Assembly (NCBI RefSeq): GCF_902713615.1
Contig: NC_052161.1
Span: 60,967,424-61,031,423 of the forward strand
Direction: 5' to 3'
DNA: 64,000 nucleotides
DNA from: Scyliorhinus canicula
Lineage: Eukaryota
In this document: positions 1 through 61,722 of the stretch, piece after piece
How the letters are laid out: each line of letters begins with the position of its first letter
How positions within the stretch are numbered: the stretch's first letter is position 1
Translations under genes and position numbers: made by a program
The notes under the pieces: model-generated
What the model was told of the DNA's origin: nothing
Database searches by the model: none
What the model saw: the letters and a program-made list of their open reading frames with translations, nothing else

Positions 1-436
1 CAGTGACCTACCCTTCTCCCCGTATACTTCAGGTATCATTGCTGTGTACCGAGAGGCATCAGGAAATTGTTTACAGATGCTCTCCAGTTTGTCGAGGTAG
101 GACTGAGCCTCTGTCAGTTGTTCCATGTGATAATATACCCAGGCATAGTTTCCATAGGTGATGATGATTCTTTTATCAAATTCATCTTCATGATTCTCCC
201 TCAGAAACTTTTCAGCATCCTTTAAGTTTTGAATCGCCTCCTCACAGTTTCCTTGCAGACAGTTTACAAAAGCGAGTTGGTTGTAAAACCTGGGTTGATA
301 TTTCTCATTTGTCTGAATTGAATCTTCTAATCTTTGCTTCATGTCATCCAAGTCAATATTTTCTTTCTGTGGCCCCCATGTGAAATGACATTGAAGCTGT
401 TCAAGCTTCTCTTTCAACAAATCCTTCTCTTGGTCA
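1..436 (-). CDS. IFIT: IFIT-family protein (IFIT-A), coding exon 2, 5' part; continues beyond the left edge
   Basis: Acceptor ...tttttctcttgcAG at 438-437. The frame reads (S)DQEKDLLKEKLEQLQCHFTWGPQKENIDLDDMKQRL...YGNYAWVYYHM...PEVYGEKGRSL with the IFIT CHFTW and YGNYAW motifs, is open to base 1, and is colinear without indels with 25127-25562. Confidence 0.93.
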
Positions 437-24079: not shown

Positions 24080-25562
24080 TCAGTGTTCGTTGGGAAAGTC
24101 ATTGTTGACCGAGATGGAAAGGCGTAATTCACAAAGAGCACTTAGATATTCTTCATTGTCAGGGTCCAACTCCAAGGCTTTTTCAAAGCTTTCAACAGCC
24201 TCGCGCTTCTTCCCATCCAGTTGGTGCATTAAGCCAAGAACACCATGGGCCTTGCTGTTTTTTGGATTCCTGCGAATTTGTCTTTCTGATATTGACTTCA
24301 AGTTCTCACAGCACCTTTTTCCTTCTGTTGAGTTAGAATCGACTTTCATTCCTTCCAGAAAATGGGTGATGGCGTTTGATTCCGAATTTTTCTGATGCAG
24401 TTCAAATAATCCAGCATCCAAACATATTGCCTGCTTATTTTCAGGACGTATATCTTCCAATCTCAGGAGATTATTGTAAATCTCCTCGACATTTTGATAT
24501 TCTTCATTTAATGAACAGATTCTGGCAAAATGCAGCTGTGCCCTAATAAATGTTAATGGGCGAGGTTCAAAAGCCTTTTTAAAATGATACTTACACAGTT
24601 CAATCAGTTCAGCTCTCTGTTGAAAAGCAGGTTCATCAGGTCTTTTGCTACATGAATTTTTATTCAAGAATAATAATTTATTTCTGTAACACACGCCTAT
24701 TTGATGGTGCAGGAAGGTAGAGTGTGGGGTCATTTCCAATCCTTTCTTCAACAGCTCCACAGCTTTTTCCACATCTCCTTTTAATCTGTAAAATTTTGCT
24801 GCATAGCGCAGCACATGTGGGAGATCAGGGGACTTCTGCAACGCTTTTTCAACTAATTCTATCGCTTCCTCACTTTGTTTGGAGTGTTGTAATTTTAGAG
24901 CTAACAGCACCATGGCTTCACCATGATTTGGATCAAACTCCAGCACACGTCTAAACTGCTTCATTGACTCAGTGGGTCCACGACTCTCTGTGGTTCCAGA
25001 AATATGTTCCAGACGAGAAAGAACAATCGCATATCCAACATTCCATTCAATATTATCTGGAACTTTCTCCACAGCCTTTTTGAAACATTCCTTTGCTTCT
25101 TCATAATATTGAGAACAAGACTTTAACAGTGACCAACCCTTCTCCCCGTATACTTCAGGTATCATTGCTGTGTACCGAGAGGCTTCGGGAAATTGTTTAC
25201 AGATCCTCTCCAGTTTGTCGAGGTAGGACTGAGCCTCTGTCAGTTGTCCCATGTGATAATATATCCAGGCATAGTTTCCATAGGTGATGACGATTCTTTT
25301 ATCAAATTCATCTTCATGATTTTCCCTCAGGAACTTTTCAGCTTCCTTTAAGTTTTGAATCGCCTCCTCACAGTTTCCTTGCAGACAGTTTACAAAAGCG
25401 AGTTGGTTGTAAAACCTGGGTTGAAATTTCACATTTGTCTGAACTGAATCTTCTAATCTTTGCTTCATGTCATCCAAGTCAATGTTTCCTTTCTGTGGCC
25501 CCCATGTGAAGTGACATTGAAGCTGTTCAAGCTTCACTTTCAACAAATCCTTCTCTTGGTCA
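24080..25562 (-). CDS. IFIT: IFIT-family protein (IFIT-B), intact coding exon 2 (495 aa with a Met-X exon 1)
   Basis: ORF 24080-25546 extended to the acceptor tttttctcttccAG at 25564-25563. CHFTW, YGNYAWIYYHMG, EKGWSLLK, LRYAAKFYR, LHHQIGVCY motifs and TPR repeats; no internal stop. Candidate AATAAA (minus) at 23790-23795 and 23717-23722. Confidence 0.96.
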
Positions 25563-59333: not shown

Positions 59334-59400
59334 ACTTTCGGTTTACAATCTCAAGCAGAATTCTGCAAAATCACCTGACTCGATAAAAAGTATAAAAATA
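59334..59400 (+). promoter_or_regulatory. IFIT-C promoter: ISRE-like element and TATA box
   Basis: ACTTTCGGTTTAC at 59334-59346 and TATAAAA at 59391, 160 and 104 bp upstream of the ATG. Confidence 0.65.
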
Positions 59401-59494: not shown

Positions 59495-59499
59495 ATGAG
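59495..59499 (+). CDS. IFIT: IFIT-C coding exon 1 (ATG AG | GTAAGA)
   Basis: catcATGAGgtaagag; 792-bp intron to the acceptor tttcttacAG at 60290-60291, giving MSDAERDSLKVKLLQLQCHFTW. Confidence 0.88.
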
Positions 59500-60291
59500 G
59501 TAAGAGTGATTTTCACTTCAGAATAACAGATACAGTAAAGGATAGTAACAGTATAGTGAAGAAGTGTCATCCTCTGTCTCAGTCCACAGATGCTCCCAGA
59601 TTTGCTGAGTATTTCCAGTGTTTTCTGTTTTTATTTCAGTCACAGTAAAGGTGTCGCTCATTGGTAACATTCCATTCTCAGAGTCAATGGGCCATGGCCA
59701 GTTTTGCAGAGCTGTACTATTGGAGGTGTCAACTGAAATGAAATGAAAATCGCTTATTGTCACGAGTAGGCTTCAAATGAAGTTACTGTGAAAAGCCCCT
59801 AGTCGCCACGTTCCGGCGCCTATTCGGGGAGGCTGTTACGGGAATCGATCCGTGCTGCTGGTCTGCTTGGTCTGCTTTCAAAGCCAGCGATTTAGCCCTG
59901 TGCTAACAGCCCGAATTTTCAGGTTGGATGTTAAACCAGGCCCCAAATGCTGTGGTAACAGTTGGATGAGGCTTCAGGATCTTTGCTGTGACTCTCGTGG
60001 CCTCTTTCCAGGGAGGCTGTGTTTCTGGCTAGTGGAGGGCAATGGGGGTGGTGATGTTGAAGTGCATCCTGATGGTATGGCACAGATTCTACTGGTCATT
60101 TCCCGTCCTGTTGTTTCTGTCTGTTTGTTTGTGTGTTTCAGCTTCCTGTGTCATTATAGTTGTCAGTTTTGGGAGCTGCTTATTAGCTTTTCTGAATTTC
60201 TGGGTTTGCCTGTGTGTAATAATTTCTCCAGTGCTATTTTGTTGCTGAATGTCCAATAAAATGAATAAATATTTAAACATATTTCTTACAG

Positions 60292-61722
60292 TGACGCTGA
60301 AAGGGACTCCCTGAAAGTGAAATTACTTCAGCTGCAATGTCACTTCACATGGAATCTGCAAGTAGAAAACTTCAATTGGGATGATTTGCTGGAACGAATA
60401 CATTATACAATAGAGTCCGATATTGTGAAATATAAAGTCATGCCTTACAATCTACTTACTTTTGTCAACTGGGTGAGAGGAAATCGTGAAGAGTCTTTCA
60501 ATAATTTATGGGAAGCTGAAGAGATCCTGAGGAAGTGTCACCAATTAGACATTGATAAATGGAGCATTGTCACCTATGGAAACGCAGCCTGGGTTTATTA
60601 TCACGTAGGAGAGCTGGAAGAAGCTCAGTCCTACCTCGACAAACTGGAGAAGATCTGTCAACAATTTCCTGATGCCTCTCGGTACACAGCAATGTTACCT
60701 GAAGTATACGGGGAGAAGGGTTGGTCACTGTTGAAATTTGGCTGGAAATATTATGAAGAGGCAAGTAAATGTACTGAGAAGGCAGTGACAGAGGATGCTG
60801 ATAACGTTGAATGGAATACAGTTCATGCAACTGTGATGTTTCGAATTAAAGAAACCTTTGGTGACCCACGGCTTCCTGAACACTGCAAAGTAGTGAAGCA
60901 GTTACACCGTGCATTAGCACTGAACCCAAAGGACTCTTTTCTCAAGATCATGTTGGCTCTTAGACTACAGGAATTTGATCAAGAAGAAGAATTTACAGAT
61001 TATTGGAGGAAGTGCTGCAGAATTCACCTGATGATCCGTATATAATTCAATACGCAGCCAAAGGTTTAAGAAGAGCACGATACCTTGATTATGCCTTGCA
61101 GATATTGAAAAAGGCACTGAGGTTAAGACCAAATTCTGCACTCCTTCACCACCAGATCGGCTTATGCTACAAAAATCGACTGAAGAAAATGTCTCATAAA
61201 TATTACGCTCCGCAAGAAAGAAAAGAATTGATTGAACTTTGCAAGTACCATTTTCAAAAAGCGTTCGATCAGAAATCCTCACTATTTTGCGCATTACTCG
61301 ATCTGGCAGAAATCTATGAAGAAACTCAAGAATATTCCAAAGTCGATGAGATCTACGAAAAACTGATTAGAATTGAGGATTGCAACCGTCTGAGCAGACA
61401 ATTAATACTGTGGAATTACGGATTGTACCAGCGTGACGTAAAAAAATCCCTGCGTAATGCCATTCAGCATTTCAAGGAATGCTTAAAACTCAAAGTTCCG
61501 AGCAAGAAGCACGACAAATGTCATTCAATATTGCAACAAATTGCTGAAGATCGACTGGACGAATATTCAAGAGACAGTGTAGCCTTTGGCATATTGGGAC
61601 TAATACACCAACTCGATGGCAAGAAATCAGAAGCCATTGGATTCTTTGAGAGAGCCCTGGAATGCGATCCTCATAATGAAGAATTTCAAAGTGCCCTTCG
61701 TGAACTGCAGCAGGCGCCATAG
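60292..61722 (+). CDS. IFIT: IFIT-family protein (IFIT-C) exon 2 with one apparent 1-nt deletion at ~60992 (young pseudogene or assembly error; 478 aa if repaired)
   Basis: ORFs 60317-61045 and 61003-61722 align consecutively to IFIT-B; no other lesion; AATAAA at 61790-61795. Confidence 0.9.

Follow-up and report, generated by a model that had tools for sequence, protein, structure and literature searches.

A short, sharply bounded island of homogenisation, probably kept by gene conversion, in exon 2 of the catshark IFIT genes

How paralogous IFIT genes exchange sequence has been described in mammals. The 5' two-thirds of mammalian IFIT1 and IFIT1B have been converted recurrently, with independent events sharing one breakpoint, at the 'pivot' (Daugherty et al. 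2016, eLife, PMC4887208), such that about the first 950 nucleotides (nt) are exchanged by the two paralogues and the 3' part keeps its orthology (PMC4887208). The authors of that study propose a common function for the homogenised part and a role in specificity for the rest, and they cite the mammalian interferon-alpha genes as a tandem immune family with concerted evolution. In IFIT1, helices 7-9 of subdomain II clamp the 5' end of RNA, and they are domain-swapped in IFIT2-IFIT3 (PMC12570964, 2025). Here, we analyse 64,000 nt of the genome of the catshark Scyliorhinus canicula (NC_052161.1, positions 60,967,424 to 61,031,423; "the window" below, numbered from its first letter), which carries three IFIT genes, IFIT-A, IFIT-B and IFIT-C, and a 108-nt patch of exon 2 that is nearly identical in all three. 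We conclude, with a probability of roughly 80%, that the patch is an island of concerted evolution kept by interlocus gene conversion and not a conserved DNA or RNA element. The genes and their patches are the following.

1 to about 470, minus strand: IFIT-A exon 2, cut by the window start
24083..25495, minus strand: IFIT-B exon 2 coding region, intact, used as the reading-frame reference
60292..61722, plus strand: IFIT-C exon 2, all of the coding region except Met and part of Ser
60623..60730, plus strand: the 108-nt patch in IFIT-C, 36 codons, AQSYLDKLEKICQQFPDASRYTAMLPEVYGEKGWSL (from the alignment)
25127..25234, minus strand: the patch in IFIT-B (genome match C16:60992550-60992657)
1..108, minus strand: the patch in IFIT-A (genome match C16:60967424-60967531), cut exactly by the window start

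IFIT-C lies on the plus strand, 35 and 60 kb from the other two genes, which lie on the minus strand. A sequence-only reading of the window had counted five differences in 108 nt between IFIT-C and either neighbour, none of them silent against IFIT-A and one silent against IFIT-B, and alignment by MAFFT returned exactly these counts. IFIT-C differs from IFIT-A at 60651-60652, 60659, 60695 and 60722, and from IFIT-B at 60651, 60659, 60670 (the silent change), 60673 and 60695. The remainder of IFIT-C is as diverged as that reading had held: the flanks of the patch are about 70% identical between IFIT-C and IFIT-A or IFIT-B, the longest BLAST alignment of IFIT-C to IFIT-B reaches 73.6% over 535 nt with the patch included, and the two proteins are about 48% identical. 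Relative to IFIT-A the patch end at 60730 is only the edge of the window; relative to IFIT-B near-identity stops at about 60733.

The patch is not confined to the three genes of the window. A six-frame search of the genome gave about 60 IFIT matches, amounting to at least 44 exon 2 copies, and the homogenised copies all lie in an array of 1.65 Mb on contig C16 (59.51-61.16 Mb), save one on the unplaced contig C457. Searching with the patch DNA gave at least 40 matches at 93-100% identity, and across all 44 recovered copies patch identity to IFIT-C was 91.7-100%, including copies that are only 47-56% identical to IFIT-B in protein. Mean pairwise diversity among the 44 copies was 0.04-0.08 in 60613-60732, 0.10-0.14 in 60450-60612 and 0.25 from 60733. 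Six copies constitute a subfamily that we call C-type (L031, which is IFIT-C, and L032, L033, L034, L036 and L037), and the other 38 are called non-C. In a tree of the region downstream of the patch, the C-type copies form a clade with support of 100 on a long branch and differ from one another by up to about 0.1 substitutions per site.

Silent divergence within the catshark genome is lowest in the patch. By the Nei-Gojobori method, synonymous divergence (dS) over 228 C-type/non-C pairs was 0.052 in the patch, where 1.2 of 24 synonymous sites differ, as against 0.85 and 0.65 in two upstream segments and 1.23 in the next 100 codons, with saturation beyond. Pairs of non-C copies gave 0.094 in the patch versus 0.41-0.48 downstream, and homogenisation within the species is in this sense directly observed. 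The sliding-window comparison proposed with the sequence-only reading placed the minimum on the patch, far below its flanks: in five C-type/non-C pairs, the lowest 36-codon synonymous window of the exon starts at codon 0 (60623) or codon -3, where the proportion of synonymous differences (pS) is 0-0.04, compared with 0.59-0.64 gene-wide and 0.27-0.40 in the next-lowest non-overlapping window. In these pairs, none of 20,000 codon shuffles matched the minimum window (P <= 5e-5). The differences that remain in the patch are mostly amino-acid changes, the proportion of nonsynonymous differences (pN) being 0.044 against a pS of 0.050, versus a pN/pS of about 0.5-0.6 in the flanks. Moreover, GC content at third codon positions reaches 0.53 over the patch as a whole and 0.76 over its first 12 codons, versus 0.37-0.39 in the flanks, which is the direction that GC-biased conversion would give, on too few codons (36) for a firm test.

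The tract has sharp edges, which differ upstream between the two groups of copies. Its limits in IFIT-C coordinates are as follows.

60619..60737, plus strand: widest possible tract common to C-type and non-C copies (nearest diagnostic sites 60618 and 60738)
60461..60730, plus strand: span homologous to the wider island of low dS in the 38 non-C copies (codons -54 to +35)

Among 1639 nt, 189 sites fully separate the C-type from the non-C copies, and none of them falls in 60619-60737; sites split 38 to 6 extend up to 60618, and none lies within the patch. The tract common to both groups is 108-119 nt long. The non-C copies are homogenised about 160 nt further upstream, for an island of about 270 nt in total, and in IFIT-C itself only the last 108 nt of that wider island take part. 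Among the non-C copies, pS is 0.03-0.21 over codons -54 to +35 (0.03-0.13 save for two windows near codons -36 to -30) versus 0.29-0.47 after 60731. At codons 30-36 pS rises abruptly, from 0.04-0.08 to 0.34-0.46. In the catshark copies homogenisation is weaker at the far 5' end of exon 2 than in the island.

Between species the patch diverges normally. DNA of other species came from the whale shark (L085), six Leucoraja erinacea copies (L079-L084), a Logan skate contig (L078) and L066, a 3.4-kb contig of JGI metagenome 3300026616 (Ga0262470_10359) with an intact shark IFIT gene. The L066 protein has an AWVNYH signature in common with Mustelus, and the probable source of the contig is a houndshark-like host whose DNA entered a microbiome sample. 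Values of dS against the catshark were as follows.

L066 against catshark: patch dS 0.09-0.15, downstream dS 0.26-0.33
Whale shark L085 against catshark: patch dS 0.29-0.33, downstream dS 0.6-0.7
Skate against catshark: patch dS 0.73-0.78, downstream dS 0.94-1.10

Patch silent divergence increases with phylogenetic distance, from about 0.1 to 0.3 to 0.75, and silent substitutions are fixed between catshark and skate at codons 19, 20, 27 and 32. Paralogues within one genome differ in the patch by a dS of 0.05-0.09 in the catshark and 0.16 in the skate. To the whale shark, the patch dS of the catshark C-type copies is 0.29 and that of the non-C copies 0.33, and the catshark C-type patch behaves as catshark sequence rather than as C-type sequence. 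Orectolobiforms have C-type genes, and therefore without exchange at least the 6.8 silent differences that separate non-C catshark from whale shark patches would be expected between C-type and non-C copies in the catshark, where there are 1.2 (Poisson P about 0.009). At 0.05, the C/non-C patch dS amounts to about 40% of the divergence between catshark and L066, and therefore the last exchange between the two groups of copies may be of some age; its date is loose.

The same pattern is found independently in skates. Five L. erinacea paralogues carry one skate-specific patch haplotype, and their dS is 0.06 over codons -24 to 0, 0.16 in the patch and 0.42-0.72 downstream. The sixth copy, L083, belongs to a divergent subfamily with the patch EVMCGPLTQGPHDTAMVPEVWGEKGWSL and shares a chromosome with L081, at a distance of 33 Mb.

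Leucoraja erinacea CM054021.1:43145093-43156875: L083

The patch dS of L083 to the others is 0.75, although it keeps related patch amino acids. Proteins related to L083 occur in Amblyraja and Rhinoraja (P0136, P0140, P0144, P0146). With regard to physical proximity, L083 is the only non-homogenised copy seen, and it is a single case.

The C-type subfamily is old. Its orthologues are 70-78% identical in Mustelus, Heterodontus, Hemiscyllium, Chiloscyllium, Pristiophorus and Heptranchias, whereas non-C copies of any species, the catshark included, are only 44-51% identical to the C-type. Because C-type orthologues occur in several shark orders, the C/non-C duplication predates the living shark orders. 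A split before the divergence of sharks and rays was also considered and set aside: downstream of the patch, the C-type groups with sharks against skates (support 99), with the alternative unrejected (p 0.25). The sequence-only reading had proposed comparing trees of the patch with trees of its flanks. In the patch tree, the catshark copies and L066 split from the skates at 100/100, and the C-type is not monophyletic and is scattered among the catshark copies. In the downstream tree L066 is sister to the IFIT-A/IFIT-B clade (support 100), and the tree of the 5' region is star-like.

Proteins extend the comparison to 139 sequences from about 21 elasmobranch species. We used a species differentiation index, defined as the between-species minus the within-species difference, divided by the between-species difference; it is 0.55-0.74 over residues 85-138 versus 0.15-0.25 elsewhere. 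Mid-patch signatures mark lineages (QFPDASRY in Carcharhiniformes, LFPEASRF in Orectolobiformes, QFTDGSRYTAL in Pristiophorus and PL(S/T)DGPRY in rays) and are common to the paralogues of a lineage, and markers of subfamily begin directly after WSLL. Residues common to C-type and non-C by lineage are TAL in Pristiophorus, NGS in Heptranchias and RF in Orectolobiformes. The C-type patch is nearest to the non-C patch of its own lineage in Scyliorhinus, Mustelus and Pristiophorus and second-nearest in Heptranchias. Because this holds in some lineages only, exchange between C-type and non-C copies is lineage-specific and not universal. The motif 'CQQF' is kept by the C-type in all species, which suggests that some C-type residues are kept by selection against homogenisation.

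How the island is maintained may be pictured as follows. Non-reciprocal recombination between paralogues of the array would repeatedly copy a short stretch of exon 2 and erase the synonymous differences in it. The ordinary 38 copies would homogenise the approximately 270 nt homologous to 60461-60730, and the old C-type would join in for no more than the final 108-119 nt. All copies have the 3' edge in common; it falls between the equivalents of Trp147 and Lys151, just before a run of variable residues. What holds it there may be selection favouring differing pocket residues downstream, or a lack of homology for heteroduplex extension. The patch differences that remain may be mostly amino-acid changes because selection keeps them.

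Several points weigh against this account. Gene conversion is read from its footprint, and no event was observed. Tests of the GENECONV type are uninformative because all copies vary little in this region. In Orectolobiformes and Heterodontus the C-type patch is not nearest to the non-C patch of its own lineage. AU (approximately unbiased) tests on short alignments of 108-363 nt did not reject alternative placements (p 0.08-0.35), such that the contrast between patch and flank trees stands in topology and support but not by this test, and homoplasy of patch sites on the downstream tree does not discriminate, the consistency index being similar throughout (0.44 for the patch and 0.49-0.55 elsewhere in the gene). 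The DNA comparison is without the closest relatives, S. torazame and Mustelus. Finally, between-species patch dS is about 0.5-0.75 of the downstream value, and some weak nucleotide-level or codon constraint may act in the patch. The downstream dS may be inflated by non-orthologous pairs.

One alternative, very improbable in our view, is that purifying selection preserves a nucleotide-level functional element in the exon, which might be a structured RNA, the target of a small RNA, or a site for splicing or regulation. The lowered between-species patch dS fits such an element, as does the conservation of third codon positions in the patch, which across the 44 copies equals that of first and second positions. 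Beside the patch, a window of 12 codons just 5' of it (60551-60586, RIIVTYGNYAWV) has a skate-catshark pS of 0.07 versus 0.33-0.66 around it, and this may be chance, given about 10 synonymous sites and many windows tested, or a small constrained spot. An element should nevertheless hold its silent sites between species, and the patch accumulates silent divergence roughly with phylogenetic distance, with some synonymous differences fixed and with a dS of 0.75 in skate L083. Moreover, the patch matched no Rfam family at E <= 1, its fold energies are ordinary on both strands (z +0.17, -0.67 and -0.31), and every genomic match of the patch among those listed lies inside an IFIT copy. The hidden element that the sequence-only reading had offered as its second explanation is therefore not supported, and gene conversion is.

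The first explanation in that reading was a recent micro-conversion between IFIT-C and IFIT-A or IFIT-B across 35-60 kb, and of this the gene conversion is retained and the single, recent, private event is not. The 36 codons of IFIT-C have no synonymous difference from IFIT-A and one from IFIT-B, as a private event would leave them. But the patch is shared by the six C-type copies and the 38 others, and all six C-type copies have it despite their downstream divergence. IFIT-C is also no closer to its two neighbours, at five differences each, than to the family consensus patch, at three, or to copies such as L010 and L022, and the Mustelus C-type protein bears the same carcharhiniform patch. 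We regard a private event as very improbable.

Still less credible is the idea that copies never exchanged sequence and that strong amino-acid constraint, aided by chance or by codon preference, kept the patch alike. Conservation of the patch protein does run deep: elasmobranchs hardly vary in PEVYGEKGWSLL, which can still be recognised in the IFITs of coelacanth, caecilian and human, and C-type and other-species non-C proteins differ at 13-28% of patch residues versus 50-60% in the flanks. Amino-acid constraint leaves synonymous sites free, however, and the same codons vary between species and in L083, whose dS shows that such constraint alone does not hold silent sites. The permutation P value comes from synonymous differences alone, and lineage-specific residues (TAL, NGS, RF) are common to C-type and non-C. 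The statement of the sequence-only reading that amino-acid constraint does not explain the missing silent change is borne out.

An assembly artefact, whether collapse of paralogues or chimeric joining, is next to negligible: a 1-nt frameshift of IFIT-C in a T run finds no support in RNA-like contigs, such that small consensus errors or allelic differences do occur, but independent RNA-like contigs of run X1 match IFIT-C with 0 mismatches over 60312-60689 and 60708-61017 and so join C-specific flanks to the patch across both edges, the same block is found in annotated proteins of about 20 other species, and the skate and whale-shark assemblies show the same anatomy. Contig depth is 7- to 250-fold higher in the patch bin and contigs break there in three runs from three organisms, as expected because the paralogues share 31-mers.

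Where the patch falls on the protein can be read from alignment to IFIT structures. The catshark copies align end to end with IFIT5 (3zgq, E 4.7e-96, residues 2-467) and IFIT1 (5w5h, E 3.6e-91), and HMMER alignment to the PDB chains places the patch at approximately residues 114-149 in human IFIT1 and 113-148 in IFIT5. The index of the IFIT1 chain is presumably offset by one from UniProt numbering, judging from the positions of K151 and Y157. In the alignment the Trp of GWSL is W147 of IFIT1 and W146 of IFIT5, and the equivalent of K151/K150 is codon 37, the second codon past the patch. Alignment to the IFIT1 and IFIT5 chains thus agrees with the earlier proposal that the segment leads into the equivalents of Trp147 and Lys151.

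60722..60748, plus strand: 3' edge region, with the Trp147-equivalent codon at 60722-60724, the Lys151-equivalent codon at 60734-60736 and the variable codons 37-41 at 60734-60748

Codon 37 encodes Lys in 19, Ser in 13, Asn in 8, Thr in 3 and Arg in 1 of the 44 copies, and at each of codons 38-41 between five and eight residue types occur. The pN/pS at these variable codons is about 0.6, high but not above 1, and suggests diversifying selection there. Arg replaces the Trp aligned with the cap-stacking W147 of human IFIT1 in two of the 44 copies, IFIT-A (window 7-9, minus strand) and L007. A structure model of the shark protein has a pLDDT (predicted local distance difference test) below 50 at residues 129-142 and was not used to number helices, and a position of the patch within helices 7-9 could not be confirmed.

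Perhaps selection, and not only the mechanics of recombination, maintains an island that encodes the part of subdomain II with the cap-stacking Trp, though we consider this unlikely. If it were so, a segment interchangeable across at least 44 paralogues would permit a common scaffold or co-assembly, the Lys151 equivalent and the next four residues would diversify RNA-end specificity, and the same boundary would have been maintained since before the shark-ray split.

IFIT-C has a two-exon layout, with a tiny first coding exon and the remaining protein in exon 2. Its other features are these.

59495..59499, plus strand: coding part of IFIT-C exon 1, ATGAG, followed by a GT donor (ATGAG/GT, 59495-59501)
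59500-60291, plus strand: IFIT-C intron, 792 nt, GT..AG
60992..60994, plus strand: T run with an apparent IFIT-C frameshift, TTT in the assembly versus TTTT in RNA-like contigs

The splice joint, 59497/60290 (cut +2), is visible in RNA-like contigs. IFIT-C is probably not a pseudogene, because it is spliced and expressed in X1. The extra T behind 60991 is present in X1 contigs at a depth of 767.4/767.4 and in X20, which consists of DNA contigs from a related organism, at 38/49.9; the TTTT version restores the frame (...EEEFYRLLEEVLQNSPDDPY...). The difference is either an assembly error or an allele. A TATAAAA-like box lies at window 59390-59399, about 100 nt 5' of the exon 1 ATG. The intron contains a very high-copy repeat at 59728-60015, which reaches a contig depth of 10^5-10^6 in every run and is covered by many RNA reads from either strand; its consensus of loose ends (GGGAATTGAACCG...) looks tRNA-derived and SINE-like (short interspersed nuclear element).

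Elsewhere in the array, many catshark copies carry in-frame stops, and NCBI names the catshark proteins IFIT5-like or IFIT1-like. The A/B/C triple (60.9675, 60.9927 and 61.0280 Mb) is mirrored by L007/L002/L034 (60.4676, 60.4926 and 60.5219 Mb), which match it in spacing and near-identity; the proteins of IFIT-B and L002 are 98% identical. The pattern suggests that a segment was duplicated at a distance of about 500 kb. Two ENA contigs labelled 'human gut metagenome' (L067 and L068) encode IFIT relatives 37-38% identical to the shark query, presumably from host or dietary animal DNA. A metagenome scan for shark IFIT loci returned only distant relatives at 23-43% identity, none from sharks, which were left unused, and a phage database search with the patch gave no match.

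How the catshark island relates to known systems is best seen against mammalian IFIT1 and IFIT1B. A literature search found no paper describing this catshark IFIT array, nor one relevantly pairing IFIT with Scyliorhinus. The family is the same in both, paralogues are homogenised within species down to synonymous sites, and the breakpoint recurs. Two paralogues and about 950 nt are involved in mammals, whereas the catshark has at least 44 copies, an island of about 270 nt, and 108-119 nt for the oldest subfamily. The mammalian breakpoint lies two-thirds along the gene, at the pivot, and the catshark breakpoint one-third along, at the Trp147/Lys151 equivalents. As in tandem immune families such as interferon-alpha, there are a tandem array, interlocus conversion, paralogues that group by species and, as far as 36 codons can tell, a GC-richer tract; unlike in those families, the tract is small, its sharp edge is common to the copies and it sits at the same place in sharks and skates. 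Human IFIT1 and IFIT5, whose cap and triphosphate pocket is known from structures (PDB 5w5h, 5udi, 6c6k, 3zgq), align with the catshark copies along their whole length, with the W147 equivalent inside the patch, but only 19 of the 44 catshark copies have Lys at the Lys151 position, and two copies have Arg for Trp. We conclude that the island represents a process already known from mammalian IFITs, with a tract that is unusually short and sharply bounded. Concerted evolution of the kind described for IFIT1 and IFIT1B in mammals acts in cartilaginous fishes as well, where the family is far larger. Trees of shark and ray IFITs that use the entire gene, or just its N-terminal third, will be misleading, and orthology should be read after residue 150. 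An edge beside the equivalents of the cap and triphosphate contacts, followed by a variable stretch, may point to the residues that set specificity among the paralogues.

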